Positions 1 through 56,115 of a DNA stretch of 64,000 bases are shown in pieces. Origin of the DNA: Isurus oxyrinchus. Taxonomy: Eukaryota. The stretch's first letter is position 1; the number at the start of each line of letters is the position of its first letter. The stretch spans positions 109,988,001 through 110,052,000 of the forward strand of contig JANJGN010000007.1 in the NCBI GenBank assembly GCA_026770705.1, written 5' to 3'. The position numbers were made by a program, and so were the translations under genes. The notes beneath the pieces are model-generated. The model was not told the origin of the DNA and searched no databases. It saw nothing but the letters and a program-made list of their open reading frames with translations.

Positions 1-59
1 AGGACAAATGAGGAGGCTGTTAAAAACAGAGGGGATACTTCATTTTATTGATGAAGACA

Positions 60-400
60 CAGGGTACGGTAAGGAAATTATTTTAAACTTTTATAAAGCA
101 CCAGTTCAGCCTCAGCTGGAATGCTTTCTTCAAATCTGAAGGATGTCAGGGACTTGGAGAGGGTGCAGAAAAGATTTGCTGAAGGTTCGCCTGGTTTAAG
201 GGTCTTGGGTTATGTGGAGAGATTGGAGAAGCTACAGTTGTTCTCCTTAGAGTCGAGAATATTAAGAGGAGGCTTGATAGCGACTTTCAAAGTTATGAAC
301 AGTATTGATTAAAGAAATTAGGAGAAACTGTTCCCAGTGACACAAGAGTCCTTAACCAGAAGATAGAGATTTAAGGTGATTGGTAAAAGAAACCGAGGCA
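60..400 (+). mobile_element. Old CR1 fragment (also at about 43940-44280)
   Basis: LERVQKRF..YVERLEKLQLFSLE. Confidence 0.75.
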
Positions 401-1480
401 TCTAACATTTGGCTGGAAGTTAGTTGCGTGTAGCCCCGTCCTGTTGTTGCCATCGGTTCGTACAGCTTAAATGGACGGCGGTGAGGAGCAGAAATCCTGA
501 TTGATTTTTGCCTCCTGATTTAGATAAGCTAACTCGGCACACAGCGGATTTGGAAACAGGAACCTGCAACACGCTGAATGCAGTGAATAATCAGTCTTAC
601 TTTCATTGATATCTCTTTTCTCTTTGCAACCAGCTTGCTTTAGTTAGTCCAAATGCAGGTTTCACCCAACACACCGCGAAAATTCCTTCCGAAGAATAAT
701 TATATTCGACTGGAAATTTTACTTCGGTTTCTATCTCTATAGATACTGCTGGACCTGCTGATTTTTCCAGGACTTTCTGCCTTTATTTCAGATCGTCAGT
801 ATCCCCAGTATTTTGCTTTTATTATTCGCGAATATTCCTTATTGCATTTCAGGCCTGCTGGACGAATAACTGTAACATTGAAAGGTGTAGATGTAGAACC
901 AACATTTCATCTCTGGTATGGTGAAGGTAAAATTGTCCTCAACAGCTCTGGGATGAAAAAAGGACGATGAGCAGGATTATTAATCTAAATTGCTGTTGCA
1001 GTGAGCTGTAACTATTCCGATGAGTGGAGGCTGGTTGGGGTCTCGATCTAAATATATAAATAAGAACTAAGTATTGGCACATTCACATTGTCTATGCTCC
1101 TACATGAAGTCGGATGCCTTCGGTGAAGTGCTGGAGGACTGCCTGCGCCTGCGGCCTACATCTTTAGTTTCAGTATAGAGTGAAGTATCAAAGGTAGGTG
1201 TTGACAAAGGTGTTGATTGGAACGAAGTGCCCCGGGAGCGGCTGAGAAAACATTACCCTTCACGTGAAGGCTTTTCAATCAGCAGTTAAGGGGTGATCTT
1301 CAATTTCCTAGACTCCACCACGGTAGAATAAACAGACCCAATACGCTGCGTTAGTCATGTGATCTCCATATCGTGGTCATACGTTTCACATATTTACCTA
1401 TGAAATAAAGTTCTTACCCAAGCCACTGGTGATATCATTCTCACTGACAGCAATTTGGCAACTAACTTTTTATTTGCAAT

Positions 1481-1535
1481 ATGTCGATACAAGCTACAGT
1501 TCAGTACATGACTCTTCTGCGCATGGTTTGGCCAG
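1481..1535 (+). CDS. Copy A exon 1, probable leader peptide (MSIQATVQYMTLLRMVWP)
   Basis: ATG at 1481, 55 nt ending CCAG|GTACC (phase 1, matches the V exon); conserved in copy B at 45364-45418. Only moderately hydrophobic. Confidence 0.65.
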
Positions 1536-4500
1536 GTACCTTTGGTTTTTATATGCTACCGGTTTCAGAATAGCAAATCGTAATTAAATTATTCTACAAC
1601 TGTTACGCATTGTAAAATTGCATCCTGTTCCTCTCAAATTCGACTGTTGGCAATTCATAATGGATCTTATATTTTACATCTTTGCTTGTTTTTCTTTATC
1701 TATTGTATGCACTGTCTTCTTCATTTTTTTTGATAGCTGCTGGAGCAACTTCGAACAAACTGGAGCAGTTCCCTAAAGACTTGGACGTGACCAGTGGCGC
1801 GAATGTTTCCATATTCTGCAGATTTCCCATATTTCAAGGTTTTCCTGATGTTCGTTGGTGGAAACGCGACGAGGAAACCTTTCTGGAACCAGATAGCAGA
1901 AAGCGAGTTGATGTAAAAAAAGGAAGTAGTTCGTTTGACATCCTGAATGTGACTTTTACAGACTCCGGGGTGTATTATTGCAAAGTAAGGCATAGGCAAA
2001 AATTAATTGGGGACGGAACTGGCACCCAGCTCACTGTGCACGGTAGGTTTTCTTGTAAGTGGAAGGGTTACAGCTCTTGCGATACATGTCATTTGAGCTT
2101 TTTATCACTTAAGGAAAACCTGGTGATATCGAATTCCTTTTACACATCATTGGGTTTTCTTCCATTGACATCAGTGTACAACGGGCGTCTTAAATTTGAA
2201 ATTAAGCAATGGAATAATATGAACAAAAAACAGAAAATGTCGGAAATATTCAGAAGGTCAGGGAGCCTCTGTGGAGAGAAACAGTTAGCGTTTCATGTCG
2301 ATGATCATAATCGATCCGAAAAGTTAACTCCGTTTCTCTACACAGTTGTCGCCCATTCTGCTGAATATTGCCAGCATTTTCTGTTTGTATTTCAGAATTC
2401 CAGCATCTGCAGTGTGTTGCAATGGATAGGATGGTTCGTCCTATCCAAAATAACGGAGCCACAGTGCAACAATGGAAACGACTATAACACTTCCTAGGTC
2501 AAGTCATTAACACAATATTCAATATCATTTAATTCACCTCAACAGTGTCGTAATTATAAGCTCAGGTGATAACTCCCCGACTACAGCGACGAATATTTCA
2601 GTCACTTTTTCCGCCCACTGCTCGAAAGAGTCCATTTAACAATTTGGATACCGAATTATTCGAAAACTGAGATGTCTATGTTTTTGTTAGGTGTGGGTAT
2701 CAAGGGAACAGAATTAAGTCGGACAAATGGTGTTGAGGTAAAGATCAACCATAATCTAAATGAATGGCAGGGCAAGCTAGCGGTGTTGGATGGACACCCT
2801 GTTCCTATGTCCGCAGTTTATACTTTGTACTTGTGTCCACTAATAACGTGTTCGAAATACCAAACTACTTCCACAAAGTCATACTACAACCCCGTAAGAG
2901 GGGAGATGTTGATCTTGCTCTCAATGTTGGATTCCACCCCAAGTCCTAGGACTTGAAGGACAATTGAGGTGCCCAATGCCCTTATTTCAATTGGTAAACC
3001 AATTGCACTCCTTCTGATGCACTCACAACTGGTAGAGTGGAGGGAGGACAACACCAAACATTTCTATAAACGTCTGGGCTCCCGTATTTGTAATTCATAA
3101 TTTCCATGCTCACTCTCCATATGCAGGCGGAAGTTAGAGCACGAGACCAAGAGAACACTGGCTTCTTTCTCTCCAGAGGGGATTCTGTCACTTTTTGTAT
3201 TAAACCAAAAGCAGATCCATGGGGAAAGGATAGCGAAATTCTGAGGCTTTGCTGGGAGTAAAGGCTAACAACATTTTGAAAATTAACAATGCCATTAATT
3301 TAATAATTTGCTATTAGTACAATACAGTAAAAGAAAACTTGTAAAGAAGACTGACTTTAACAAACAACAAAAGATGCAACCTAATAAGGGACTTTACTTC
3401 CAGTTACCAGGTGATTACAGATAGAGCGGACAGATAGAGCGTTTCACGTCAAGAAATGGTAAATTTGGATTGTTATAAGCAGAATCTTCCCCAGAAAATG
3501 CGTTCAACGGACGGAGACAGAATGCAGTTGTAGAATGGCAAAACCCTGGTATTATATAAAACATGCACTCTGGGTTAGGATTTCCTACTCGGTTTCCGTC
3601 ATCGGTATGGATGCTGTGATCTATACAGCCATAAATAACTATCAAAATAAATTATTTCTTGGCGTCCTAAACACTCCAGCTCTCCGTCCCCCTTTGGTGA
3701 AAGATGCACGATTTGAAACCTCTACCACAGACCCTTGAAATGTTATATAATCAATGGTAACGCACGGATTCTAATCTATATCATTTTCTGGAGTCTATTT
3801 AGATACCGGAGATATTTTCATATCACACATCTTCTCAATATAAACCATTAACACAAAATATCTTCTGAAACATATGAAATATTCGAAAACGGCCATTTTT
3901 AAAATAAGCATACAACGTTTAGAACGACAACGATTTTTACAGAAAACGAGCGTCGGTCCCATGGATCGTGTAGACTGGTTTGCGCTCTCTCGTTGATAAA
4001 TTCGGACAGGAATCTCACTCGGGGTCTGTGCTGCAAACCCTAATCCCGCTCTGGTACCTGACATTTCCATTCCAGGCAGTGACACTTGTTACAAAAACAT
4101 AAAACTGCCGATGCTGGAAATCGAAAACAAAAACAGAATTACCTGGAAAAACTCAGCAGGTCTGGCAGCATCGGCGGAGAAGAAAAGAGTTGACGTTTCG
4201 AGTCCTCATGACCCTTCAGCAGAACTAGGTGAATCCAAGGAAAGGGGTGAAATATAAGCTGGTTTAAGGTGGAGGGGTGGGTTGGGTGGGGGGAGAGAAT
4301 TGGAGGGGGGTGGGTACCCCTCTCCACTTCTCTCCCCCCACCCAACACCCCCCCCCCCAAAACCCCACCTTAAACCAGCTTATATTTCACCCTTTCCTTG
4401 GATTCACCTAGTTCTGTTGAAGGGTCATGAGGACTCGAAACGTCAGCTCTTTTCTTCTCCGCCGATGCTGCCAGACCTGCTGAGTTTTTCCAAGTGACAC

Positions 4501-6827
4501 TTGTTTCTCGGTTGTTACACAGCCTGGGACATACTCCCTCTTTGTGGGTCGCTCGAAAAGACACCTGGCAAATTTGCTGTGCTCCTCATTACATTGTATA
4601 AAATAAATGCAAACACAAAGGTAAACACGTGACAGCAAGGACCACTATTCTCACAGTATGAGGTTAAGAACATATCGAGGATAGATAACCTAGAATGTGC
4701 TCCTTTAAATTCAAAAATATATTTCTTTCCTGTTAAAGTACCTCCAACACCACTGAAAATTGTTCCTGTTGAAGGGATTTCAACGACTTCTCTGAAACTC
4801 GCGTGTAAAACGGCTACCTTTTACCCGGAGGATTTAAGAGTTTCCTGGCAAAGAGATGGTGTGGAAATTCTGACCGGAATAAAAACTGTGAAAAGCGAGA
4901 CCGTGGATGGGCTCTACGAGGTTTCCAGTTCTTTGGAAGAAGCACAGCCTGTCCAGAATAGAGTCGTTTATACCTGTCTGGTATATCACGAGTCTCTTCA
5001 GGTGCCCGTCAATGTCAGCTACATCATAAATCAAGGTAAGATTGGAAACATTTATAGCAGCGAGTGGGGATGTGCTCCAACCTGTGTTTACTCATTAGAC
5101 ATGTAGCTGGGCTGCTGTTCAAACTTGAGTATACAGGGTGAATGTGGACTGTATTTACTCTCAATGTCACATTAATGGGAATGAAATAAAATAATCAAAT
5201 GGTTTGCAGCTGGAGGAGGGGGAGAATATCTCCCTGATGAGATCTGATGGAGGTTGATGTGTGAACTGCTCTAAAAACTGAAAGCTCATTCCTCGTCACA
5301 TTTTTGCCAAATGAAACGAATTTACTCATAAAATGGATCGGTTTTAGCAGTGAATTTTATCTCCCGTATATTTAAATTGAATATATGAGAATATCATTGT
5401 GCTCATCAGTTTTCTCTGGACTGTGCTTTTAGCTGTTTCACCCATAGACTCAAAAATTCCTGCTCTAAATATTTCCGCCTCTCCAACTCTCCTTTTACAC
5501 GCTCCCTGAACTCTACCTCCACCTGTCCGAATATCACTTTATGCGTCTTGTTATTGTTTGATAACGCTGCTGTGAAGTGCGTTTGGGCGTTTTGCTCCGT
5601 TACATGCAAGGTATTCTTGTTACCTACTGAAAGTTGCAGGAGGTATCCTTTGGTAAGACTGTTTATCAGTATTGAAGAGTGGAAGATTTTGCCTCTCTTT
5701 GTTTCCAATGCGCATCTGTCTGGTGTAGCACAGAAAGGTAAAAAGTGTACGTGCCTTACTCTTAACAAACAACCCTCACGTCCATGAGAAGCTTCCTGCG
5801 TCTTTATTGATTTATTCCCTCCTTAAATTGCGTTACTGGCTTTCAGTTTATACCGTTTGGAACACGTTTTAATCCTTCTGCAGCTATGCCCAATTTATGA
5901 AAGCAACCGGTCCCCACGGACATTAAACGGTTACCCAAGAGACAGCTTTACACCTCGCCCTCCTATGTCTGACACATAACTCTGTATATAAATCTCGCTG
6001 TGATCTGCGGGTTCTTGTTTCAATCTTTTCTTGATCCTGTAGGTACTGATGTCAATCTTCTGCTGACCTTTCGATGGGCAGGGGGCATATTGGCGATTTT
6101 ACTATTGATAATTATTTTGACGATACTCATTTTAAAAGCATCAACTGGTAAGAGCATTTTTTTACCTCGCCACAGTCTTTATTTTCTAAAGCCCAGTTAT
6201 ACCGTCAAAAGACATAAAGGACGGGTGAATAGTGTTTCATTATAAAGGAATAACGAGCATGTTAATGCATCTTTAGATAATGAAGTTGATACCACGAGAG
6301 CGTTATGGGATTGAGAGTTCAACATGACAATATAAACCGATTTTGGAATGCGAATATTTCATCTTCTCAATGGAACTGTTCATTCGGTTCATACACTTTC
6401 AATTTGTTACCCCCGGGATCCTTGACGTTCTGCATTTTTAAAAATATCAGTGTAGATCCAGACCTCGACGTGCAAACACTTTGAAGTGAATTTTGACTTT
6501 CTGCGAAGTGTAAAACGGGTGATATATGGAACTGGCAATCTGTTTTACATCTCTGCCTGATTAAATTTCCATTGCAATGTTACGATGTAAAATGGCTCGC
6601 CGACTCTTTGTCACATGCTTTACGCTATCCCACACAAGGCAGTGAGCTCCATTGGGTGTAGCGTATTTACGGAGTACTTCAATTTTCAAGGCTCCTTCCT
6701 TTACACAGTGAAAGCGTTTAGCTTGGAAGTCAGGTTATTGGTTTTGCTTGCACGCTCATTAAGTTATTCAATTTGGAATTCTTCTCTTCCTTTAGGCGTT
6801 AACAGAAATTCTGTGGAAGCTGATTAG
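1481..6827 (+). CDS. IgSF receptor copy A (leader-VJ-C1-TM-short tail), 264 aa spliced; SIRP/NKp30/VJC1-like, candidate activating or tail-less receptor
   Basis: Exons 1481-1535, 1737-2042, 4739-5035, 6043-6147 and 6796-6827 all have GT-AG boundaries with phase-1 introns and sum to 795 nt with no internal stop. Domain motifs are given in the exon entries. Confidence 0.85.
1737..2042 (+). CDS. Copy A V-type Ig exon with J-like G strand
   Basis: TTTTTGATAG acceptor; EQFP..VTSGANVSIFC, VRWWK, DSGVYYC, GDGTGTQLTV; donor G|GTAGG. Confidence 0.93.
2225..2420. mobile_element. Older, decayed palindromic pLTR-like element
   Basis: Inverted arms (AACAGAAAATG..AATATTCAG / CTGAATATT..CATTTTCTGTT); also present in copy B near 47505-47700. 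Confidence 0.6.
4188..4226 (-). ncRNA. Minimal hammerhead-like motif (antisense arm)
   Basis: Reverse complement is AGTT-CTGCTGA-AGGGTCATGAGGACTC-GAAACGTC-AACT. Confidence 0.6.
4410..4448 (+). ncRNA. Minimal type I hammerhead ribozyme-like motif
   Basis: AGTT-CTGTTGA-A-GGGTC(ATGAG)GACTC-GAA-ACGT-C-AGCT: stem I, core, stem II and palindromic ACGU helix III, as in PLE minimal hammerheads; the core has U in place of A6. Confidence 0.65.
4739..5035 (+). CDS. Copy A C1-type Ig exon
   Basis: VPPTP..LKLACKTATFYPEDLRVSWQRDG..DGLYEVSSSL..YTCLVYHESL (C1-set FYP, W and YxCxVxH motifs); AAG|TA acceptor, G|GTAAG donor; 297 nt. Confidence 0.93.
6043..6147 (+). CDS. Copy A transmembrane exon
   Basis: GTDVNLLLTFRWAGGILAILLLIIILTILILKAST; TAG|GT acceptor, G|GTAAG donor; Arg codon CGA at 6072-6074. 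Confidence 0.88.
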
Positions 6828-6844
6828 AGTGAAGAGTCAATGTG
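6796..6844 (+). CDS. Copy A first cytoplasmic exon, with in-frame TAG at 6825-6827
   Basis: CTTCCTTTAG acceptor; GVNRNSVEAD*; TG|GTGAG donor; 49 nt, the same length as the copy B exon 52451-52499, which has CAG at the aligned codon. Confidence 0.72.
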
Positions 6845-6944
6845 GTGAGAATGTTCTTCATATTCCAAAAAGAGGGGTTAGCGGGAAACAGCAAGAAATA
6901 TTGCAACCAACCGAGAAGAATTTAATTAAATGTCATAGGATCAT

Positions 6945-7520
6945 AGAACTGAAGTTATTATGCCTGTCCCGCTTCGGTGAAAAAACTATCCAATCAGCCC
7001 AATTCCCCACTCTTTACCCCATAACGCTTCATTTTTGTTTGTACAAGAAAATCTCTAATTCGCTTTTTTTTAAGTTTCCATTGAATCTGCTTCCTGCAAC
7101 TTTGCAGGAAGTGCATTCCAGACCACAACAGCCGGTTACACTTAAAAAACGCACCTGGTCCTGATTATTTTTCCAATTATCTTAAGTCGCGGTCCCTTGG
7201 ATACCAACCCAATCACCACTGGAAACACTTACTCCATATTTACTTTCCTCAAAACCTCTCATAATTTTGAACAACTCCATTATATTCTTCTTTATCTTTC
7301 ACTGCTCTGTGGAGAACAATCATAGGTTCTCTAGTCTCTCCAACCTAACTGAAGTCCTTCATCCCTGGTACCGTTCTAGTAAATCTCCTTTGTAATTGTT
7401 CCTAAAAATGTTGTTCCCAGAATGGAACACAATGCACCAATGAGGCTTAAGCAGTGATTTATAAAGTTCCATCATAAATTCCTTATTTTTGCACCCCATG
7501 CCCTTATTTATAAGGCCAAA
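6945..7520 (-). mobile_element. Old CR1 3' fragment shared by copies A and B
   Basis: CR1-like tail and RT C-terminal sequence on -; homolog at about 52590-53390. Confidence 0.65.
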
Positions 7521-8397
7521 GTAAACGTGTATTTATTGTAACATACACTAATGATGGATACTGTTTCATCATTCAAGTCATTTCAACAATACGAGGTTCT
7601 TAGATGCCCTGTTGCTTAATTGGCATATTATGTAGCATACCCAGATGTGTAGCATAACTAGGAAGGCACCTAGTTAAAAGTGTTAAAAAGAAAGAACATG
7701 GCAATAGTGCAGGGTAAAGATATCGGTCATGATAGCCGCAGTGTGGCAGGAAGAGATGGGACATAAAGATAATTGGGTGCACCAGCAAATAGGTTCAGAG
7801 TAGGGAAATGGTAAAGGGACAGACATAAGCACTCTGTATCTGAATGCAGCCAGCACTTCTAACAAGATAGATTATTTGATGCTACACATAGGTGAGAAAG
7901 CATGTTCTGAGCAAGTCACAAAGAGAATGCAAAGGGATGTAGATAGGTTATGTGAGTGAGCAAGCATTTGGCAGAAGACGTATGATGTGGGAAAAGGTGA
8001 AGTTATCTTCTTTGGAAGCAAGAGGTGAAAAGTAGAATATCATTTAAATGGAATAAAACTACAGAATACCGTGGTACAGAGGATATAAGACAAAGGTGAG
8101 GAATTTCTTCTCTCAAAGAGTTATGGGGGATGGGGGGATGGGGGGCTGGAGGTAGGAAAGTAGTGTTGAGGCCAGAATCAGATCAGCCATGATCTCATTG
8201 AATGGTCTACTCCTACTCCTGCTTCTTGTCACCATGTCATTAACCTTTGCATTTTTGTACCCAGAGAACAATGGAGGCTGGGTAATTGAACATGTTCAAT
8301 TCTGAATTGGACAGATTTTCATCTACGAGAGTGTCAAGGGTGATTTTTGGCGTGGGGTGGGGGGGTAGTGGAGGGGGCAGTGGGTCGGAACGTGGAA

Positions 8398-8511
8398 GGC
8401 AAGAAAGGCAGTACTGAGAACAACTTGGCCTATACCACTGTCCAAGCCAGCACCAGGCAAAAAAACGCAAAGCCCATTCTGCCAGAGGAGAACATGGTAC
8501 AGATGAGATAA
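8398..8511 (+). pseudogene. Possible orphaned ITIM-like module of copy A (KKGSTENNLAYTTV...)
   Basis: LAYTTV fits the ITIM consensus and its context resembles KGRGRDNKLTYATL of the terminal exon. No acceptor is visible; the upstream segment is deleted relative to copy B. Confidence 0.4.
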
Positions 8512-8869
8512 TTCATTGAAACCCTATCAGTGTTATGTGGTATGACGTTAAGCTGTAGGAATTGGAAAGGTCCCAGTTTCAATAAACCAACTGTTGTTTC
8601 AGTTGATCTCAGCCAAGGTTCATCAGATTTGCCTCATGTCCTAGAACAGAAAGACCTGGGAGTATGTGTGCATTATTCTTTGAAGGTAGCTGGGCAAGGT
8701 AAGCGGGTGGTTAGCAAAGCAGGTAGGATCTTGGGCTTCATAAATAGATACATTAAGAAAAAGCAGGGAAGTCATGTTGAAAATTTATAAAGATTTGTTT
8801 AGTTCACAGAGTATTGCATCCAGTTCTGGTCACAACATACGTGGGCCTTTAGAAGGCTGTAGAGATGAT

Positions 8870-9946
8870 TTCCGCCATATCCCCCAACTCCAGCATGATG
8901 CCACCATCAAACATATCTTTCCTGCACCCCCGCCGCCCCCACCCCCTCCCCGCACCCCCTCCCCCACCCCCCCCACCCCGGTGGCATTCCGCAGGGATCA
9001 TTCACTACAGGACACCCTGGTCCACTCCTCCATCACCCCCTGCACCTCAACCCCCTCCCACGGCACCTTACCATGCAACCGCAGAAGGTGCACCACCTGC
9101 CCCTTCACTTCCCCTCTACTCACCGTCCAAGGGCCCAAACACTCCTTTCAAGTGAAGCAGCATTTCACTTGCACTTCCCTCAATTTAGTCTACTGCATTT
9201 GTTGCTCCCAATGCAGTTTCCTCTACACTGGAGAGACCAAACGCAGACTGGGTGACTGCTTTGCAGAACACCTTCGGTCTGTCTGCAAGCATTACCCAGA
9301 CCTCCCTGTCACTTGTCATTTCAACACTCCACCCTGCTCTCATGCCCACATGTCCGATCTTGGCCTGCTGTATTGTTCCAGTGAAGCTCAACGCAAACTG
9401 AAGGAACAGCACCTCATCTTCCGGCTAGGCACGTTTCAGCCTTCCGGACTGAATATTGAGTTCAACAATTTTAGATCATGAGCTCTCTCCTCCATCCCCA
9501 CCCCCTTTCTGATCCCCCCTTTTTTTCCAATAATTTATACAAATTTTTCTTTTCCATCCATTTCCATTATTTTTAAATGTATTTCCATCCATTGCTTTAT
9601 CTCTACCTTTTAGCCTTTTTTGATTCCTTCACCCCACCCCATCCCCACAGGGCTATCTGTACCTTGCTTGTCCTGATTTCTAACCTTAATTAGCACATTC
9701 CTTAGATAATATCACCACCTTCAACACCTCTTTGTCCTTTTGTCTGTGACATCTTTTGGTTATCTCCTCATATGACTGGCTCTACTTCTCCCACCCACCC
9801 CCACCCCCCTTAAACCAGCTTATATTTCACCTCCCTTCTATTTTTACTTAGTTCTGTTGAAGGGTCATTCAGACTCGAAACTGTAACTGTGTTCCTCTCT
9901 GCTGATGGTGCCAGACTTGCTGAGTTTTTCCAGGCATTTTTCGTTT
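8870..9946 (+). mobile_element. 5'-truncated Penelope-like element (GIY-YIG endonuclease, 3' pLTR with hammerhead motif at 9850-9888)
   Basis: CNRRRCTTC linker, LVYCICCSQC..LYTGETKRRL..EH, GLNIEF; TSD TGTAGAGATGAT at 8858-8869 and 9947-9958. Confidence 0.9.
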
Positions 9947-10470
9947 TGTAGAGATGATGTACCGGAATGGTTCCATGTATGGGGGATTTTGAGGGCAGAT
10001 TTGCTAAAGGTGTACAAGATTATAACAGCTTTAGAGAAAGTAGACAAAGAAAAACTTTCTATTAGCTGATGGCACACGGTCAAAGTTTTGGGCAACGGAC
10101 GCAGGGGAAATGTGAGGAAAAACATTTCAGACAGTGTGTGGTAATGACCCATAACTTGCTGCCCACCAAGGCGGTGGAAGCAGAGATCAATGACTTCAAA
10201 AGGAAATGGGATGGGCACTTCAAGTTCATTTCCTTCCAAGGTTACAGTGATAAGAGTGGGGGAATGGAGCTAACGGAATTGCTCCGTGGAAAGCCTTTAG
10301 ACTGGGTAGGCTGCATACCCTCCCTCTGAGCATCCAATGGACCCTGACTTTAAACTGAATTTGATAACTGATGAGAGAAAATTTCATTACAGCCTTTTTT
10401 TAAACCCTGATTGCCTCAAGCAACGAACTAACGATAAACTAACAGGTGACATTAAATATTACTTTCACAG

Positions 10471-10610
10471 ATTAAAGAGGCAGGGATAACAAGCTGATTT
10501 ACGCCACTCTGCAGCTCGCTGATCCAAGAAAACATCAAAACATTAACAGTAAGACGAACACGTAGTGTACGCAGAAGTGAACATGACAAGGAAAGAGAGA
10601 AGCTGAGAAT
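10471..10610 (+). pseudogene. Decayed terminal ITIM exon of copy A (probably 3' UTR now)
   Basis: TTTCACAG acceptor; LIYATL and VVYAEV are recognisable but lie in different frames, with indels and TAA/TAG stops relative to the open copy B exon 59410-59548. Confidence 0.8.
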
Positions 10611-11417: not shown

Positions 11418-11587
11418 GAAACAGAAATACCTGGAAAAACTCAGCAGGTCTGGCAGCATCCTCATGAGGACTCGAAACGTCAATTGCGCTTTCCTCCACC
11501 GGTGCTGCCAGACCTGCTGAGTTTTTCCAGGTATTTCTGTTTCTGTTTTTGTTTTGGATTTCCAGCATCCGCAGTTTTTTGCTTTTA
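11418..11587. mobile_element. Short palindromic pLTR mini-element
   Basis: Inverted CTGGAAAAACTCAGCAGGTCTGGCAGCA arms; 15-bp TSD ACAGCCCCATTCACA at 11403-11417 and 11588-11602; empty site near 61213. Confidence 0.87.
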
Positions 11588-15184: not shown

Positions 15185-17495
15185 CCACCTGTCGTGCTTG
15201 CGGGCAGACTGAAGGTGTTCCTCAAAGCAGTCACCCAGTCTTTGTACGGTCTCTCCAATATAGAGGGGACCACATTGGAAGCAGCGAATGCTTTTGACCA
15301 AATTGAAAGAGGTGCAAGTGAAGCACTGCTTCATCTGAAAGAAGTGCTTGTTCTCACTTTTCACCCCACCAGCCTACAAATTCAAAGGGTCATCCTCTGC
15401 CACCTCCGCCAACTCCAGCATGATGCCACTGCAAAACAAATCTTCCATTCACAACCCCCTGTCGGTATTCCATAGGGACCGGTCACTCCAGGATACCCTG
15501 GCCCAATCTTCCATCACCCACAATACCTCATCCCCCTCCCACAGCACCCTGCTATGCAATCACAGAAGGTGCAACACCTGCCCCTTTACTTCCTCCCTCC
15601 TCTCTGCCCAAGGGCTGAAACACTCCTTTCAGGTGAAGCAGCGCTTGACTTGTGCCTCCTTCAATTTGATCTACAGCATTCACTGCTCCCAATGCAGTCT
15701 CCCCTATATTGGTGAGGCCAAATTCTGACTGGGTGACAGCTCTGCAGAATGCCTTCGATCTGCACACAAGCATGACCCAGACCTTCCTGTCGCTTGCCAT
15801 TTCATCTCATGCCCACATGCCTGTCCTTGGCCTGCTGCAATATTCCAGTGAAGCCATTGCAACATAGATGACTATGTGGGGGGGTAGGATTAGTAAGTTT
15901 GCGGATGACACAAATATTGTCTGGGTGGTTAACAATGAGGTTGAGTGTCTTGGGCTACAGGAAGATATAGACGGGATGGTCAAATGGACAGATAACTGGC
16001 AGATGGAATTTAACCTGGAAAAGTGTGAGGTGATACATTTTGGAAGGAGTAATTTGACAAGGCAGTATTCAATGAACGGCATGGCACTAGGAAGTTCTGA
16101 GGAACAACGGGACCTTGGCATGTGTTCACCACCTCACTAACATGCAGAGCGGCATGTTAGTGAAGTGGTGAAAAAGGCATATGGGACACTTGCCTTTATC
16201 AATCGAGGCATAGATTACAAAAGTAGGGAGGTCATTTGGAGTTGTATAGAACCTTAGTGAGGCCACAACTGGAATACTGTGTGCAGTTCTGGTCGCCACA
16301 TCGTAGGAAAGATGTGATTGTACTGGAGGGGGTGCAGAGGAGATTCACCAGGATGTTGCCTGGAATGAAACATTTAAGTTATGAAGAGAGGTTGGATCGA
16401 CTTGGGTTGTTTTCGTTGGAGCAGAGATGACTGAAGGGCGTCCTGATCGAGGTGTACAAGGTAATGTGGCCCATGGACAGGGTGGATAAGGAGCAGATGT
16501 TCCCCTCAATTGAATGGTCAGTCACAAGGGGGCATAAGTTCAAAGTCAGGGGCAGGAGGTTTAGGGGGGATGTGTGGAAAAACATTTGTACCCAGAGGGT
16601 GGTGATGGTCTGGAATACACTGCCCTGGGAGGGTGGTGGAGGTGGGTTGCCTCACATCCTTTAAAAAGTACCTGGATCAGAGCTTGACATGTCATAACAT
16701 TCAAGGCTATTGGCCAAATGCTGGTAAATGGGGTTAGGTAGGTAGGTCAGTTGTTTTTCACGTGTCGGTGCAGACTCGATGGGCCAAAGGGCCTCTTCTG
16801 CCCTGTGATTCTGTGTTTCTGAAGAAACAGCATCTCATCTGCCAATTAGGATTTTACAGCCTTCCAGCCTTAACATTGAGTTCAACAAGTTCAGACCATG
16901 AACTCTCTCTGCTGCATCCTCACGCCCTTTTTTATCGCCTTTTTTACTATTCATTTTCATTTTCTAATTTCTTTTTCTATCAATTTTTAATTTTTGTTTT
17001 TATCCACTTACTTTAATTTTATTTATTTTCATCTTTATTCATTGTTTTATCCCCACCATTTATCCTATTTTCAATCGATTTTCCTAAATGTCCCCTCCCC
17101 TCACTCCATCCTCACAAGGGCCATCTGAAACTTGTTCATGTTGTTCTTTCCAGACTGCTTCCTCTTGCCCAGCTGTTATCACATCCTGATTTCTGACCTT
17201 ATTGCCACCATCAGCACCTCCTTTAGCCAGCACCACTACCATTAACAGCCCTTTGTGCTTTTGTCCAGGACATCTCTGGCAATCTCTCCTTTGCCTCCAC
17301 CTATCACTGGCTTCTATATACCTTCAGCTGATCCACTGTCCTTAAACAGTATGAATGTCATCACATTTTTTTCATCTCTTTAAATCAGAAGAAGAGTCAT
17401 ATGGACTCGAAATGTTAACTCTGTTTTTTTTCCCCTCTCCACAGATGCTGTTAGAACTGCTGAGTTTTTCCAGCATTTTCTGTTTTTGTTTTAGA
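15185..17495 (+). mobile_element. Penelope-like element with an inverted 5' piece, nested in the CR1 and itself interrupted by a CR1
   Basis: GIY-YIG on - at 15185-15350 and on + at 15350-15860, resuming about 16820; pLTR-like end at 17380-17495. Confidence 0.8.
15865..16815 (+). mobile_element. CR1 3' fragment
   Basis: [21 protein letters not shown], (GATTCTGT)-type tail. Confidence 0.88.
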
Positions 17496-23353: not shown

Positions 23354-26300
23354 TATCTACGTTAGCTTTCTGATGGTGATTGGGGATTCCACAATCAGCC
23401 AAATACCCTGCCTTCAAGTTTCCGCTCAAACGAACAAACATCACCTGATAGGGCATCTTCCCATTCTTTCAAGAGGAGTCAGGTGTAGGGGTTCACTGGT
23501 GGAGACACGATAACCAGGAGAGCTTAGATGACGAGGAAGCGAAGAGACAATATAATCTTCCATTAAAGGGGGAGACGCCCTCTGTCTCTTGAATTCTTGA
23601 ATGTGAGATTCAAAGAATCTGTCCGCTATTACTACTATGTGTACTGCCGGGAAGGATAGTCAGGGATAGAACCGGCTCAGAGATTCTTGCGCCGGTTGAG
23701 TCGCAGGTTCGGGATGTTGCAGGAGTCAATCATGCAACAGGTACTTGGCGAAATTCCATCGAGGTAGCGAAGAGTGTGGGAATGGGACACCTGCCCAGGT
23801 TTTTGTATTTAGTGCCAGCAGCAAACCAGCCTAGAGCTAAGATTACCGATTTACGGGGAAGCTTATTTGCAAGTGTTTTTCTTTAATGTAGCCAGTTATA
23901 TATTTGTTAAAGTTTACAATTTCGTTACTGTGGAAGCATGATCCACATTCTTTTTAAAAGGTAGATGAATAAAAACGTCAATAAGGCGAACTAGATTAAT
24001 TTTTCGGGGCCAACTTAGCACACTGAGCAAATGCATTCCTACACTGCAAAGTAGTATGACTCTATAACCAAATAAACTAGGATTCGATAACCAACGAGTC
24101 CAGATTTACGAAAATTGACTAAAGAACAACAGGCGAAGGGAAGATAAATTGTTTTGCAAAGTAAGTTGCTATGATCAGGAATTTCCTGCCTGGAAGCAGC
24201 AATAGTAATTTTCAGGGGGAAATTGGATAGAAACTACAAAATAAATTCGGCGCTTTGCAGAAAGAGCTGTAGAGTGAGGTTAATTGCATTGTTCTTTCAA
24301 AGATCCAATACAGACACGATGGGCCAAATTCTCCATGACTCAGTACATGTTTCACTTTTCTTTCTCTTTTTAAGTGTCCATGTAATTTCTGGTTCATGTT
24401 CAATAATGCTTGAAGACGCAGAAGTTAAAAACGCTCCAATAAAACACCACGTTAAAGGACCTGTCCTAAAATTATGTTTTAAATTACAGGCTACAGAAAT
24501 AAAATAATAATTAATATTTCAAAATCAAAATCATTTTCTTTTCCTCCCAATTTTTTTCATTCTTCTGATTGAATCTAAATTCTAAAGCCATTTCACCAAC
24601 TCCACTGCGCAAATCAGTTGTTTTACCCTGAAGATCTCAGTGTGACTCCAGTTTAGGAACCATGCGACAATTAGAACAGGGACCAACACTCCGAAGCAAC
24701 GAACCACGGTGGGAATGTACGAGCCTTCCAGCACTTTAAGGTATACGGCATCAACCAGCAGTGGAGCTGCATACAGCTGCCAAGAGTGTCATCTTTCTCT
24801 TCAGACTCCAACATTGTCAATTAAAAATGTGAATGTAAGGTCATTTTTTTTTCAAAAACTCTTGCTCGTTTGTCGCCTCTCTTAATACAAGGGCGTTTGT
24901 GAATGCATGTTAGCATTTGGCGCTGTTGCATTCCTTTGTCACATTATGGATTTAATGCTTCAATCGCATTTTGTTATTTGTTGGCATTTATTTGAATATT
25001 TTTAAAACATACCTGTATTTGTATTAAATGCCGATTAAACGATTTGTTCTGATCCCATGTATCCCTTTGGTTTTTTTGTTGGTGTTGGTTTTATTGATAT
25101 TAACGCCTGTTGGCCTTACATCTCTGCAACTCTTTGCAGTCGCTGCTAACGTCGTTGTCGTCTCTTTGACGTTCGGCATTTAGTGGGTATGTTGGTAATA
25201 ACGGCGCTGCGTTGGAGATTATTTGAAGCTGAGGTGCTGCCAAAGGTGAGACACGCCTTTATTACCAGAACGCAGCGTCGCTTTGAAGATCAAACTTTTG
25301 CAATAAATCTGCAAAGTCGCGCTAACCGATAGGAGATGGCAATTAAGATCTTTGGTGATGGACATTTGGATAACACTTCACACGTTGAAAGCAATGAGAT
25401 ATTCTCCCGGGAAATTGCTGATGCACAGTTCCGACTATTGTTGCTCCGGACAAGCATTATCTTGCCAGAGACAACGACTTCCTCTGGAGTAGCAACGTTG
25501 GGAAGATATTTGGGGAGTTACCATGTTGTGGGGAAATGGTGGAAGCGATTATAAAAAGCCATATAAGATTGCACCAGAAAGGGCAGCCAGACGAATTTTT
25601 TCTAAGTTATCGCACGAGAGTAAAATGCCAACCGCCTCGATAACGGGCTAATGATTTGGTTTTTTACATCCTACACGGTCACCAGAATTGCCAGAGTCCT
25701 TTGCAGTCAACATTTGAAGTATGGTCAATGTTTTGATTGGGAAGCGTCACTGCAAACTTGCGCACAGCAAATCCACAAATTAGCAACGTGATTATGACCA
25801 GAAAACCCGTTTTCTTTTTGAGTGATGGAACGATTCGGTCATTGAAATTATGAAAGAGTTTGATATGGTTGATCCAAAGAAAATGTGTTCACTCGTGATG
25901 GAATCCAGAACTAGAGGGCAGAAATGGATAGCCATAAATGAATCGAATAGGTAATTCGTGAGAAGTTTCTATAGCGAGTAAGTGGTAAGAATGTGGAGCA
26001 TGCGAGAGAAACGAGTAACTGAGGAGAATAGACTACACACGTTTAAAGGGGAAGATTGATATACATATGTGGCAGGAAGATATATGCAGATTGGGATAGA
26101 AGAAGAGGAGGGAGGAGCATAAATGCCAGCAGATATCTGCTGGACCGAATAGCCTGTTTTGTGCTGTAGGCTCTATGCATTTGTATGCAATGCAGAACAG
26201 AACATGTTAGAAACACTTGATGAGAAAGATAAGTTAACGGTTCAGTCATAGCCCTTCATCAGAACTGGAAAGATGAAGAGGAAATCACAAATGACACAGA

Positions 26301-41559: not shown

Positions 41560-43564
41560 AAAGGAATCCTGAGGGTTATTGCTGGCGACTCGAAAGAAAC
41601 GGTGCTTGTACCGTTCGTGTTAATGCAGGCCTAGTAACCTGGCTGCTTGCAGCCAATTCACTTATCCGGGCACTGCTGGTTACCCACCTGTACCGAAACG
41701 CCGCTTCATTGCCGGTTTTGAGGATAGCGACATCGGGACCAACTAATATCAATTGGAAATTTCGTGCGTCCTGAGACAGCAACTGGGATAGAGAAACTTA
41801 CAGTAGAAACGCCACATAAGTAGCTTTTATTTAAACATTACTCACCATTAAATCTTCTCTTCTTGGGAGTTTTTTTACATTGATTTATGAATTACATTAC
41901 TGGTCTCACTATGAGACAAAGAGATACATTTTATTTTGGGCTTAGCAATAATAAGCTCAACTAACGTAAACACTTTAACATTTGCAGCTCGTCGCGTGTC
42001 ACGCAATCAAATTTAAGGTATACATTATTGGGTTACAGACCAGGCATTAGTCCACTAAATGGCAAAACCTGCTGGGAGAGCCAAGGAGCCCGACCCTTCC
42101 TCCTTTGACCTTAAGCATTATATGACAGATGACACATGGTGGAATCTTCAAAAATACATCAAAATAGATTTGCCAATCCTTCTGTGACTCATTACTTTTA
42201 CTACGTTTGCCGAGGCCTCATTAATGTACTTCCAATATTTGACATTTAATTTCATTCCCAACATTCATAATTTTATTTTCATTAATCCAAATATTCTGCT
42301 GATTGTGATATTAGTGATCTCTCGCGTATACTTATCCCCTTTACTGTTTATTAACCCGCTGCAAGTGTTTCTACTGGAAAATGTCATGCACCTTTTTCTT
42401 CCCCCTCAGAATGTCAGTACCGGTCCCGAGAGAGATCACAAACAACTGTGTCACTCAATCGGATCGGATCTGGAGCTACGCCCCTGTTCAAGTGATGACC
42501 ATCAACAATTCTTTTTCGAGTTATCCATTAAAAAGCCCTGCGGAATAACAGATTTGTAACTCTTTCAGAGTCACAAACAATTAAACTAAATTAACTAAAT
42601 GAGAGATAAATAACAGATTTGTAACTCTTGTTGAGTTAAAACAATTAAACTAAATTAACAAAATTAGGATAAATCAGGCACAGCCCCTAATAAGGTCAGC
42701 TGTAAAACCAAGAACAAAGTTTAAAGGAAACTTACAACTTTAAACCAAAATGTGATAAAAGGGGTCAATAAAGCATCCCAGTCCCTGCGGTGCCCACCGA
42801 GCATGGAAGGCCTCGAGTGTGCCAGCAGACACCGTGTGCTCCCTCTCCAAAGACACCCGGCTGCGAATGTAGCCACGGAAGAGGGATAAACAATCGGGCA
42901 GGATTCCCCCATCGATCGCCTGGACCTGTTAATAGCCAACTTGGCCAGGCCCAGGAGTAGGTTCACGAGGAGATCCTCCTCCTTCCCAACCCCCTTCTGC
43001 ACCGGATGTCCATAGATCAGGAGCGTGGGGCTGAAGTGCAAACAAAACATTAATAAAGGGTTTTTCAAGTAACTAAAAAGGGAGTGCAACCTACCACACC
43101 CTATATAAGCATGGTCCACGGATTCCACAAGACCGCAAAAAGGGCATGTGTCCTGGGAGTCCGTGAACCTATGCATTCTACGATTATAGGGGACTGCTGC
43201 ATGCAACACCCTCCAACCCAGGTCCCCGATAGAAAGGGGAAGGACACCTCCATAGATGGCCTCCCATCGGGGGGCCTCCGCCGCCGGACGGCAACAAAGC
43301 ACGCCAGGGCGTGTCCGGGCGGCGGACAAGGGCGAGAAAATGGAAGGTGTGCAGCAGCAGTCCATACAAAAAGCTCCTCCGCGCCGTGCCAAATGGCACA
43401 GAGGGCATGTCCCCGAGGCGGCTCATATTGCGATAACAGATTTGTATATAGGTGCAAAGCGCTGGCCAATTATTGGATTCAATAAGGGAGGACAGTTGAG
43501 GCGGACAACTATCCTTCACTAATCAAGCAGCTACCACAAGTTCGCTCCTTCAGAACAGACCGGA
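41560..43564 (+). pseudogene. Degenerate LicD/fukutin-family (phosphotransferase-like) gene with possible ricin-B-like lectin repeats
   Basis: Across frameshifts: NAGLVTWLLAANSLIRAL (41622), RFIAGFEDSDIG (41702, DxD), FYIDL*I (41873), PLNGKTCW/KEPDP..LKHY..DDTWW (42052-42143); then QLCHSIGSDLELRPCSSDDHQQFFF (42410 exon), interrupted by Tx1 insertions and resuming at 43447 to a GTAAGT donor at 43565. Confidence 0.5.
42559..43432 (-). mobile_element. Two tandem 5'-truncated L1/Tx1-clade LINE insertions (42559-42609 and 42624-43432)
   Basis: WRVLHAAV..CPFCGLVESVDHAYIGC zinc knuckle; ATAACAGATTTGTA at 42545, 42610 and 43433. Confidence 0.8.
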
Positions 43565-45597
43565 GTAAGTGGGAATAATATATGTTCTATTTCATTATCC
43601 TATACCTCACAACAAGAGAGATTTTGCACTGGCTGTTACCAAGTGACAGTGGTAAGCGCAGGTTAATTGCATGGCTAAGCGCCCCGTGGCTCTCATTAGT
43701 TCCGATGTCAGCTCACTTACATTTGTGTTTACTAAACACCTGCCGCCTTTCCTACCCTTCCTTAAGATGGAACTGTGAGGAGGAACTGAGATAATAGCTC
43801 ACGTTTTACTGATTGTAAAGAGAAAGGAGATTTCGGTGAAAGTAAAGACCTCGGGGCTTTTCCACAATTTTTGGCGGTGTTACAGCGAATGAGGAGGCTG
43901 TTAAAAATGGAGGGGATACTTCACTTTATTGATGAAGACACAGGGTACAGTAAGGAAATTATTTTAAACTTTTATAAAGCACCATATCAGCCTCAGCTGG
44001 AAAGTTTTCTTCAAATCTGAAAACTGTCAGGGACTTGGAGAGGGTGGAGAAAAGATTTGCTGAAGGTTCGCCTGGTTTAAGGGTCTTGGGTTATGTGGAG
44101 AGACTGGAGAAGCTACAGTTGTTCTCCTTAGAGTCGAGAAGTTTAAGAGAAGGCTTGATAGCGACTTTCAAAGTTATGAACAGTTTTGATTAAGGAAATT
44201 AGGAGAGACTGTTCCCAGTGACACAAGAGTCGGTAACAAGAAGATAGAGATTTAAAGTGATTGGTAAAAGAAACCGAGGCATCTAACATTTGGCTGGAAG
44301 TTAGTTGCGGTGTAGCCCCATCCTGTTGTTGCCATCGGTTCGTACAGCTTAAATGGACGGCGGTGATGAGCAGAAATCCTGACTGATTTTTGCCTCCTGC
44401 TTTAGATAAGCTAACTCGGCACACAGCGGATTTGGAAACAGGAACCTGCAACAGGCTGAATGCAGTGAATAACCAGTCTTACTTTCATTGATATCTCTTT
44501 TCTCTTTGCAACCAGCTTGCTTTAGTTAGTCCAAATGCAAGTTTCACCCAGCACACCGCGAAAATTCCTTCCGAAGAATAATTATATTCGACTGGAAATT
44601 TTACTTCGGTTTCTATCTCTATAGATACTGCTGGACCTGCTGATTTTTCCAGGACTTTCTGCCTTTATTTCAGATCGTCAGTATCCCCAGTATTTTGCTT
44701 TTATTATTCGCGAATATTCCTTATTGCATTTCAGGCCTGCTGGACTAATAACTGTAACATTGAAAGATGTATATGTAGGACCAACATTTCATCTCTGGTA
44801 TGGTGAAGGTAAAATTGGACTCAACAGCTCTGGAATGAAAAAAAGGACAATGAGCATGATTATTAATCTAAATTGCTGTTGCAGTGAGCTGTTACTATTC
44901 CGGTGAGTGGAGACTGGTTGGGGTCTCGATCTAAATATATAAATAACTAAATATTTGCACAATCACATTGTCCATGCTCCTACATGAAGTCGAATGCCTT
45001 CGGTGAAGTGCTGGAGGACTGTCTGCGCCTCCGGCCTTCATCTTTAGTTTCAGGATGGAGTGAAGTATCAAAGGTAGGTGTTGACAAAGAAGGTGATTGG
45101 AACGAAGTGCCCCGGAAGCGGCTGAGAAAACATTGCCCTTCACGTGAAGGCTTTTCAGCCGGCAGTTAGGGGGGGTGATCATCAACTTCCCAGACGCCAC
45201 CACGGTAGAATAAACAGACTCAATACTCTGCTTTAGTCATGTGATCTCTCATGTCGAGGTCATACGTTCCACACATTTATCTATGAAATCAAGTTCTTAC
45301 CCAAGCCACTGGGGATATCATTCTCACTTACAGCAATTTGGCAACTAACTTTTTATTTGCAACATGTCAATGCAAGCTACAGTTCAGTACATGACTCTTC
45401 TGCGCATGGTTTGGCCAGGTACCTTTGGTTTTTATATGCTGCCGGTTTCAGAACAGCAAATCTTAATTTAAATTATTCTACAACTGTTACCATTGTAAAA
45501 TTGGATGCTGTTCCTCTCTAATTCGACTGCTGGCAGTTTCATAATGGATCTTATATTTTACTTCTCTTGCTAGATTTTCGTTATCTATTGTATGCAC

Positions 45598-46582
45598 ATG
45601 ATAGGGTCCCCCTTGTCCTCACTTATCATCCCACCAGCCTCCGCATTCAAAGGGTCATCCTCCGCTTTTTCCGCCAACTCCAGCATGACGCTACCGCCAA
45701 ACACATCTTCCCTTCAACCCACCCCCGCAGCGGCGGCATTCCGTAGGGATCGTTCCCTCTGGGACATCTTGGTCCACTCCTCCATCACCCTCGACTCCTC
45801 AACCCCCACCTATGGCACCGCCCCATGCCCACACAAAACATGCAACACCTGCCCCTTCACTTCCTCTCTCCTCACAGTCCAAGGGCCCAAAGACTCATTT
45901 CAAGTGAAGCTGCATTTCACTTGCATTTCCCCTAACTTAGTCTACTGCATTCGTTGCTCCCAATTCAGTCTCCGCTACATTGGAGAGACCAAATGTAAAC
46001 TGGGCGACCGCTTTGCAGAACACATGCGGTCTGTCCACAAGAAAGATCCAAACCTCCCTGTCGCTTGCCATTTTAACACTCCACCCTGCTCTCTTGCCCA
46101 CATGTCTCTCTTTGGCTTGTTGCATTGTTCCAGTGAAGCCCAACGCAAACTGGAGGAACAGCACCTCATCTTCCGACCAGGCACTTTACAGCCTTCCGGA
46201 CTGAATATTGAATTCAACAACTTTAGATCGGGAACTCCCTCCTACATCCCCACCCCCTTTCCGTTTCTTCCCCCTTCATTTTGTTTTTTTCCAATAATTT
46301 CTATAGATTTTTCTTTTCCCACCTATTTCCATTATTTTTAAATTTTTCATGCCCTGTTAGTCTTTCCACCCCAACCCCACTAGAGCTGTACCTTGAGTGT
46401 CCTGCCATCCATTCTTATTTAGCACATTCGTTTAGATAATATCACCACTTTCAACACCTCTTTGTTCTTTTGTCTGTGACATCTTTTGATTATCCGCCCC
46501 TATCACAGCTTGCTTGTCCCTACAACCACACCGCACCGCCCCCCCACTTCTCTCCCACCACAACCCCCACCCCCCCCCCCTC

Positions 46583-46613
<31 letters not shown>

Positions 46614-46734
46614 TAAACCAGCTTATTTCACCCCTCTCCTAATATTCACTCACTTCTGTTGAAGGGTCATGAGGACTCTTTCTTTCTCCGCCGATGCTGC
46701 CAGACCTGCTGAGTTTTTCCAGGTAATTCTGTTT
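45598..46734 (+). mobile_element. Penelope-like element (GIY-YIG) in copy B intron 1
   Basis: ORF 45592-46341 has the GIY-YIG motifs; TSD TTGTATGCAC at 45588-45597 and 46735-46744; empty site near 1703. Confidence 0.9.
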
Positions 46735-46938
46735 TTGTATGCACTGTCTTGTTCATTTTCTTTTATAGCCGCCGGAGCAACTTCGAACAAACTGGAGCAG
46801 TTCCCTAAATACTTGGAGGTGCCCAGTGGCGCGAATGTTTCCATATTCTGCAGATTTCCCATATTTCAAGGTCTTCCAGATGTTCGTTGGTGGAGATGAG
46901 GTGAGGAAATCTTTCTGGAACCAGACAACAGAAAGCGA

Positions 46939-47168
46939 TAAAAAACAAAAAAAAACTACGGATGCTGGAAATCCAAAACAAAAACAGAATTACCTGGAAA
47001 AACTCAGCAGGTCTGGCAGCATCGGCGGAGAAGAAGAGAGTTGACGTTTCGAGTTCTCATGACCCTTCGACAGTTCTGTCGAAGGGTCATGAGGTCTCGA
47101 AACGTCAACTCTTCTTCTCCGCCGATGCTGCCAGACCTGCTGAGTTTTTCCAGGTAATTCTGTTTTTG
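46939..47168. mobile_element. Palindromic pLTR/hammerhead mini-element inserted in the copy B V exon
   Basis: Arms meet at about 47072; TSD CAAYAGAAAGCGA at 46926-46938 and 47169-47181. Confidence 0.9.
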
Positions 47169-52195: not shown

Positions 52196-52654
52196 TGTTT
52201 TACATCTCTGCCAGATTTTATTTCCATTGAACTTTTGCAATGTAAAATGGCTTGCTGACTGTCTATCACAGGGTTTTGCACAATCCCACAAAAAGCAGTG
52301 TGCTCCATTGGGTGTAGCATTACCAGAGTATTTCAATTTTCAAGGCTCCTTCCTTTACATGATAAAAGTGTTTAGCTTGGAAAGCATGTTGTTGATTTTG
52401 CTTGCACACTCATCAAGTTATTGAAGTTGGATTTCTTCTCTTTCCTTTAGACGTTAAGAGAAATTCTGTGGAAGCTGGCCAGAATGAAGAGGCAGTAGAG
52501 TGACAATGTTCTTTATATTTCAAAAAGGGGGATTAGGGAGGAATAGCAAGAAATATTGATATTTTGATTAATTTACTTAATTAAATTTCATAGAATCATG
52601 GAAATGAAGTTATTGTGCCTGTGCCACTTCTGTGAAACAATTATCCAATTAAAG

Positions 52655-56001: not shown

Positions 56002-56115
56002 GTTGGACAAGGACGACGTCACGATATTGTTGCCTACGCTAGTCTAAACTTGAGACACGACAATGGACCCTCCAAACATAGACAGGAGAAAGAGCACACC
56101 GTCTATTCCCAGGTA
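56002..56115 (+). pseudogene. Copy B cytoplasmic exon with ITIM VAYASL and ITSM-like TVYSQ(V)
   Basis: TTTTCGCAG acceptor; Tyr codons at 56035 and 56104 (23 codons apart). The phase does not match the flanking exons, so the boundaries or an indel are uncertain. Confidence 0.7.

Follow-up and report, generated by a model that had tools for sequence, protein, structure and literature searches.

Origin and present status of a shark VJ-C1 receptor gene with a transmembrane arginine and a shortened tail

When a receptor gene of inhibitory type loses its signalling tail and gains an arginine in its membrane exon, has it become an activating receptor, or is it simply decaying? This question is raised by a stretch of 64,000 nucleotides from Isurus oxyrinchus (GenBank assembly GCA_026770705.1, contig JANJGN010000007.1, positions 109,988,001 to 110,052,000 of the forward strand), hereafter the window, in which positions are counted from the first letter. 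The window holds two copies, A and B, of a gene for a receptor with immunoglobulin (Ig) domains, here called VJ and C1, a transmembrane (TM) segment and a cytoplasmic tail. A preliminary description proposed that copy A is the activating partner of a receptor with the tyrosine-based inhibitory motifs of immunoreceptors (ITIMs) represented by copy B, the two forming an independently evolved paired system. In the analysis presented here, the origin of copy A from an inhibitory-type gene is better supported than any present function. The reading to which we give about even credence is that copy A is a decaying or unconstrained copy, most likely no longer selected as a signalling receptor.

Copy A and its descent from an ITIM-type gene

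The exon model of copy A was rebuilt from the sequence, with the joined reading used as a phase check only and database searches made exon by exon. The five exons from the leader to the first cytoplasmic exon have GT-AG borders and phase 1 throughout; these exons and the exon relics are as follows.

1481-1535, + strand: leader exon; codon 1520-1522 (CGC) encodes an Arg within the hydrophobic core
1737-2042, + strand: germline-joined VJ exon, open; Pfam V-set/I-set
4739-5035, + strand: C1 exon, open; Pfam C1-set, with the UrIg2 C domain as best solved relative
6043-6147, + strand: TM exon of the ITIM-type class, with the derived Arg at 6072-6074 and an adjacent derived Trp
6796-6844, + strand: first cytoplasmic exon, with TAG at 6825-6827
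8401-8499 (boundaries approximate), + strand: relic of a middle cytoplasmic exon, reading ..LAYTTV..
10471-10596, + strand: relic of the terminal ITIM exon, with LIYATL and VVYAEV in different frames and in-frame stops

The frame is open from the ATG to the TAG at 6825-6827, and the 763 nt across the leader, VJ, C1 and TM exons hold neither stop nor frameshift, as the preliminary description had stated. Both Cys pairs, the WW, the DSGVYYC motif and the GxGTxLTV J motif are retained. Past the TM segment the tail has 14 residues, with no Tyr, no ITIM and no immunoreceptor tyrosine-based switch motif (ITSM), a short tail such as activating members of paired families have. An ATTAAA is present near 6925. 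The three differences from copy B on which the earlier proposal was built also hold. In pairwise alignment, the in-frame CGA (Arg) at 6072-6074 stands opposite GGA (Gly) at 50910-50912, a glycine that requires a frame-corrected reading of B; the TAG at 6825-6827 stands opposite CAG at 52480-52482; and the terminal-exon homologue at 10471-10596, frameshifted and with stops, has gaps of 2 nt and 1 nt against B's exon at 59410-59548. An argument from nonsense-mediated decay, based on the position of the TAG 17 nt before the exon end, was dropped, since it is valid only if that junction is the last one.

The direction of these changes can be read from relatives. The nearest full-length relative is P0154 of Heterodontus francisci (XP_067906043), whose TM core is near-identical to that of copy A (AGGILAILLLIIILT). 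P0154 has Gly-Cys where copy A has Arg-Trp, Arg and Lys at the cytoplasmic edge where copy A has Ile and Ile, and five tyrosine motifs in its tail; P0154 and its close relatives share the Gly-Cys, the Arg/Lys edge and four to five tyrosine motifs, all of which copy A lacks. Because frame-corrected copy B matches P0154 at the Arg, Trp and Ile/Ile sites, the Arg, the Trp, both Ile and the TAG are derived in copy A. The descent of copy A from an ITIM-type receptor gene, with Arg and stop derived, is thus well supported by its ITIM-type TM exon and decayed ITIM exons, and this part of the earlier proposal stands.

By exon structure and sequence, copy A belongs to a large elasmobranch family of non-rearranging VJ-C1-TM receptors. 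It has the split leader, the single-exon VJ with J motif, the one C1-set domain, and the TM and separate tail exons, an arrangement shared with family members P0154, P0005 and P0165. A search with the C1 exon covered 1.8 billion representative sequences and matched several hundred relatives, with a C1 identity of 68-70% to P0005 and P0006. The single-C1 relatives are NCBI gene models from Scyliorhinus, Heterodontus, Heptranchias, Pristis, Mobula, Hypanus, Hemitrygon, Narcine, Chiloscyllium and Callorhinchus, examples being P0154, P0005 (Scyliorhinus canicula XP_038662025) and P0165. Their automatic names are inconsistent, such as SIRP-alpha-like, 'tyrosine-protein phosphatase non-receptor type substrate 1-like', 'tapasin-related protein-like', 'NCR3LG1-like' and 'Ig lambda-like'. 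A search with region 1-262 of P0154 returned 22 relatives, none of them encoded in the window and none from transcript assemblies, and no paper on an elasmobranch VJ-C1-TM receptor family was found in the literature searched.

Against solved structures, the C1 domain of copy A is closest to the UrIg2 C domain (9dmx, E = 1e-16), followed by Ig heavy chains, and its V domain to I-set domains, the V domain of T-cell receptor (TCR) alpha and shark NAR. Two known groups were considered and rejected as the home of the gene. SIRP proper has V-C1-C1 where copy A has a single C1, and no SIRP chain was among the 60 best matches of the V or C1 search. UrIg and UrIg2, like the PRARP genes (all of them non-rearranging and antigen-receptor-like), resemble copy A in their split leader, in a VJ exon joined in the germline and in a true C1 domain. 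Between VJ and TM, however, copy A has a single C1 exon, against the many C domains of UrIg and UrIg2, for which an ITIM/activating pairing is not described (PMC12227049).

Copy B and the history of the pair

Copy B is a pseudogene. Its exons, in the same order as those of copy A, are the following.

45364-45418, + strand: leader exon, with the core Arg as in copy A
46769-47320, + strand: VJ exon, broken by a TGA and a repeat insertion, with the J-motif Gly changed to Asp
49604-49901, + strand: C1 exon, frameshifted by one extra base at 49658
50883-50985, + strand: TM exon, out of frame, 2 nt shorter than that of A; GGA 50910-50912 opposite CGA
52451-52499, + strand: first cytoplasmic exon, open; CAG 52480-52482 opposite A's TAG
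56002-56112, + strand: middle ITIM/ITSM exon, reading VAYASL...TVYSQ, with a matching tail stretch in Heterodontus P0154
59410-59548, + strand: terminal exon, open, with LTYATL...AVYAEV...TGA in one frame

Four lesions disable it. The VJ exon has a TGA in frame (46897-46899) and is split by a repeat of 234 bp, inserted at 46939-47172 and accompanied by a 9-bp target duplication; C1 has the extra base; and the TM exon is 2 nt short. With acceptor and phase conserved, this last lesion leads to a TGA at 50918, so that the glycine of copy B exists only in a frame-corrected reading. The inserted element is one copy of a high-copy short repeat of the window. The earlier idea that B represents the inhibitory partner is weakened by these lesions (a stop, an insertion and two frameshifts), and as copy B is dead, there is no live pair at the locus. 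A paired system would comprise two expressed members with near-identical ectodomains; here the ectodomain exons are 92-97% identical and one of the two members is broken.

The tail of copy B nonetheless informs on the family. Its middle exon at 56002-56112 is a genuine family exon, given the matching tail stretch in P0154; the counterpart of this exon is absent from copy A, whose relic at 8401-8499 corresponds to another middle exon. Between the two copies lies a third VJ-C1 relic (23458-24813, + strand), much older and more diverged, with a V-like piece at 23458-23547, C1-like pieces at 24597-24813, stops and a frameshift.

The identity between the two copies is not uniform along their length.

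1-5750, + strand: high-identity tract of copy A against copy B (43888 to about 50610), 93-98% identical, including introns and 1.5 kb of upstream flank

Past about 5750, identity drops abruptly to 60-83%; overall it is about 95% before this point and about 78% after it. By segment, divergence is 4.6% at 5036-5700, 27.5% at 5760-6042, 20.4% in the TM exon and 20.3% at 6148-6535, the TM exon thus lying at the level of its flanking introns (20-27%). Such a sharp drop implies that the membrane and tail halves separated long ago and that the 5' halves were later made alike. The homogenisation is attributed to a conversion or crossover whose tract covers at least 5.7 kb and stops about 290 bp short of the TM exon. 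Copies A and B are an old tandem duplicate: divergence of their membrane and cytoplasmic halves has gone on for a long time, and re-homogenisation later reached the promoter flank, leader, VJ, C1 and introns. A recent switch by point mutation, which similar ectodomains might suggest, does not fit this old split. Because the homogenisation of the 5' half is recent, the openness of A's ectodomain exons is informative only for the short time since.

The arginine in the membrane and in the family

Copy A as a working activating receptor would use its TM Arg to dock an adaptor with tyrosine-based activation motifs of immunoreceptors (ITAMs), of the FcR-gamma/CD3-zeta type, its inhibitory tail being lost and its ectodomain kept alike by conversion; we regard this as possible though doubtful. 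The coupling of PIR-A to FcR-gamma and the general pairing rule are treated in PMC2213385 and PMC3533184. In favour of docking, an Arg near the top of the TM segment, such as that in the 'QNLIR' of CD89, is the known contact for the gamma/zeta dimer, and it has to be correctly placed (PMC13107469).

The geometry of copy A does not force its Arg into the bilayer. Its TM exon encodes five apolar or neutral residues (LLLTF), the Arg, 20 apolar residues and then a Lys. When 19-residue windows were scored with the Hessa 2005 scale, the best window, at -5.8 kcal/mol, started two residues after the Arg and thus excluded it; the best window holding the Arg at least 3 residues deep reached -2.75 kcal/mol. 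The caveat in the preliminary description, that the 20 residues after the Arg could span the membrane by themselves, is therefore a real one. Most other Arg-bearing members differ: in the Arg...DH class described below and in P0165, P0068, P0089 and P0118, 15-17 apolar residues follow the Arg and the best window includes it. In two irregular TM segments, P0065 and P0060, with 13 and 19 residues after the Arg, the best windows exclude it. In mammalian receptors coupled to FcR-gamma, the Arg and the acidic residue that comes next are separated by about 16 apolar residues. CD89, NKp46, NKp30, LILRA and OSCAR resemble copy A in their short tail and in an Arg close to the N-terminal end of their TM segment, but they follow that spacing, whereas copy A has 20 apolar residues and then a Lys.

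The difference arises at the cytoplasmic end, where the two derived Ile, ancestrally Arg and Lys, lengthen the hydrophobic stretch by four residues. With a stretch so extended, the helix of copy A can slide in this model, and the Arg would then sit at the outer membrane interface instead of serving as a buried docking residue. The same feature is what recommends a further alternative, namely that copy A is expressed as a tail-less, adaptor-independent decoy or ligand sink in which the longer hydrophobic stretch offsets an interface Arg. Besides the best window without the Arg, an intact open reading frame (ORF) and a motif-free tail of 14 residues agree with it, as does the stepwise replacement of the two basic residues by Ile, one codon passing from Lys (AAA, copy B) through Asn (AAT, in the sister species compared below) to Ile (ATT, copy A). 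Moreover, catshark P0165 has an equivalent short tail, which terminates at a stop reached by reading through the donor of the corresponding exon. The signs of relaxed constraint given below apply equally to a decoy, and decoy function and neutrality are indistinguishable by sequence alone; we consider it improbable.

The family itself contains two TM classes: the ITIM type, and an old class whose members have a short tail and, in the TM segment, exactly 16 apolar residues between the Arg and an Asp-His.

Old Arg...DH short-tail members: P0005 and P0166 (S. canicula); P0168, P0174 and P0034 (Heptranchias); P0043; P0025

The Arg-to-acidic spacing of this class, 16 residues, is that of the mammalian FcR-gamma-coupled receptors. 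As a dedicated Arg...DH short-tail class already existed in the family, copy A is not the origin of a paired system. A TM exon of the Arg...DH class was sought in the window as a possible alternative exon, and none was found.

Gain of an Arg by ITIM-type TM segments is recurrent. At or near A's column it is seen, without ITIMs, in P0068/P0156 (stingrays), P0089 (Hemitrygon) and P0118 (Heterodontus). In P0165 (S. canicula) the Arg is at the next column and the tail ends right after the same first cytoplasmic exon, and the ITIM-less P0065 (Heterodontus) has its Arg three residues further on. Most of these members adjoin an ITIM-bearing relative in the C1 tree, where the grouping is by species, not by TM class.

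Two further observations were made on these tails and membranes. The C-terminus of P0165 (..EEPVG, stop) aligns with the read-through of copy A past the donor of its first cytoplasmic exon (..EESMW, stop in GTGAGA; 6828-6850), so that a short-tail isoform made by read-through or intron retention may be an old option. In Mobula, P0160, P0159 and P0046 have Glu or Glu-Arg at the column of A's Arg; P0160 carries a complete four-motif ITIM tail, and a charged pair within an inhibitory-type TM segment is unusual.

Constraint, competing readings and comparison with paired receptors

The reading of copy A as decaying or unconstrained draws on several features of its coding exons. Leader codon 14 is Arg in copy A and in dead copy B, and Gly, Ala or Val in the 11 relatives listed; such a residue within the hydrophobic core would be expected to make for a weaker signal peptide. 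When 18 A-B replacements were polarised with 11 outgroup proteins, 8 proved derived in A and 9 in B, so that A is no better conserved than a dead copy. Among the A-derived changes, C1 E21A, A26T and A90V and V G44D fall at family-invariant sites.

A sister species gives a second view of the gene. The run search returned DNA runs of the source organism and of this second organism, in which about 46% of the sampled words are present, and the stretch 1400-6900 was compared with one of the latter. Over 5793-6108 its contigs show 6 differences from copy A, against 106 between A and B, and are thus orthologous to copy A. Among the differences listed (all but 44), those in exons are one silent change, five replacements and a C-to-T change at 4954, which turns CAG into TAG in C1. 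A C1 stop in the sister-species ortholog of A is therefore probable. None of the differences listed falls at CGA 6072 or TAG 6825, and both are likely to be shared by the sister species. A search for runs found none on record as RNA.

Under the decay reading, the TM Arg, the premature TAG, the leader-core Arg and the ectodomain replacements at family-invariant positions would all stem from relaxed constraint. Recent refreshing of the 5' half would explain why the 763-nt frame is still open, and any protein made would have its Arg at the outer membrane interface.

Several points weigh against copy A being unconstrained. By the Nei-Gojobori method, the A-B comparison over leader, VJ and C1 gives a proportion of synonymous differences (pS) of 0.061, which is intron-like, and of nonsynonymous differences (pN) of 0.034; the ratio of 0.56, or 17 replacements against about 30 expected at the silent rate, indicates some constraint on one or both copies since the conversion. 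The 763-nt ORF, all splice sites and the core Ig residues are intact in A, against three disabling lesions over this tract in B; the chance of A's leader, VJ and C1 staying open by luck, from the A-B substitution and indel densities, is about 0.12 and not negligible. The three nucleotide changes that lengthen A's hydrophobic stretch all lead toward Ile and look directional. The sister-species stop is read from one short contig (depth 19), 31 nt from the contig end, although no contig carries the reference base. Three small sister-species runs of RNA type, of unknown tissue, covered repeats only (2320-2503 and 3976-4527) and no exon, and are uninformative as to expression. In a MAFFT alignment, A's Arg occupies the same column as the Arg of the Arg...DH class. 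Finally, across family members Arg occurs with ITIM in 3 and without ITIM in 13, as against 28 members with ITIM and 16 with neither in the absence of Arg (Fisher p = 0.003, raw).

The last association was foreseen in the preliminary description, and it holds as a tendency without being proven. It persists when only tails of at least 25 residues are counted (3/9 vs 28/7, p = 0.001), and truncated gene models may add noise to the counts. Under phylogenetic control, 5 independent pairs are usable and the sign test has a median p of 0.25, a number of pairs with which the test cannot reach significance. Counter-examples also exist: P0060 combines an Arg with LAYASL, and Mobula P0160 a Glu-Arg pair with a full ITIM tail, paralogs of precisely the sort that the preliminary description had named as telling against its proposal.

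For copy A as a working activating receptor, the balance is accordingly mixed. It accords with an Arg and a stop derived on an ITIM-type TM exon, an Arg in the Arg...DH column, similar switches beside ITIM relatives (P0165, P0068/P0156, P0089, P0118, P0065), the raw association, an ectodomain conversion tract as in other paired receptors, and an ORF that stayed intact while the ITIM exons decayed. It is opposed by the 20 apolar residues after the Arg, unlike other Arg members, the Arg in the leader core, conservation no better than that of dead B, the possible C1 stop in the sister species, the lack of any transcript in its three small RNA-type runs, the five-pair test, the two paralogs combining Arg and ITIM, and the want of a live inhibitory partner within the window. 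Of the original proposal, then, the ITIM origin stands and the coupling of Arg gain to tail loss holds as a tendency, while the locus has no live partner, the TM geometry is unlike that of most Arg-bearing members and there is no sign of purifying selection specific to A.

A broader view is that the shark VJ-C1 family is a true paired system, in which activating members arise repeatedly by gain of a TM Arg and loss of ITIMs with ectodomains kept alike by recombination, copy A being a live, recent example and a second route besides the Arg...DH cassette; we hold this tentatively, as less probable than its negation. If copy A works, sharks would be evolving brake and accelerator pairs, built from a TCR/Ig-like VJ-C1 chain, through steps already known from the mammalian KIR, SIRP and Siglec pairs. 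Such receptor evolution would then extend as far back as the oldest jawed vertebrates, within a family near the ancestry of antigen receptors. If copy A is decaying, which is somewhat more likely, the locus represents ordinary birth-and-death turnover, and the family-level results remain: two TM classes, recurrent Arg gain with tail loss, and an ectodomain conversion step.

The remainder of the window is rich in repeats.

4091-4495, 46939-47172, 46609-46739, 53832-54027, 9792-9950, 11462-11580: high-copy short repeat
8774-9481 (+ strand), 45592-46341 (+ strand), 53834-54826 (- strand), 15347-15855: repeated element with a long ORF

The short repeat, whose core reads ..CAGAATTACCTGGAAAAACTCAGCAGGTCTGGCAGCATC.., is of very high copy number and often forms inverted pairs. 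In the sister species the depth of its contigs adds up to between hundreds of thousands and millions, and the RNA-type runs contain it as well. One copy of the long-ORF element has a weak GIY-YIG match (E = 0.006, below the Pfam cut-off), and one copy lies in B's first intron; the sequence suggests the 3' part of a Penelope-like retroelement. An ORF of 223 amino acids at 42721-43392 (- strand) has a weak match to zf-RVT, the reverse-transcriptase zinc-binding domain (E = 7e-5, below the Pfam cut-off).

The locus can be compared with the mammalian pairs SIRP-alpha/SIRP-beta, KIR2DL/KIR2DS, Siglec-5/14, Siglec-11/16 and PIR-B/PIR-A. As in copies A and B, their ectodomains are near-identical by conversion while TM segments and tails diverge; one member has a basic TM residue and a short tail, and pseudogenes are frequent, as here. 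In the mammalian pairs, however, expression is known for both members, and adaptor binding requires the basic residue, which is buried, whereas in this shark locus the ITIM-bearing partner is dead and the Arg of copy A possibly lies outside the membrane core.

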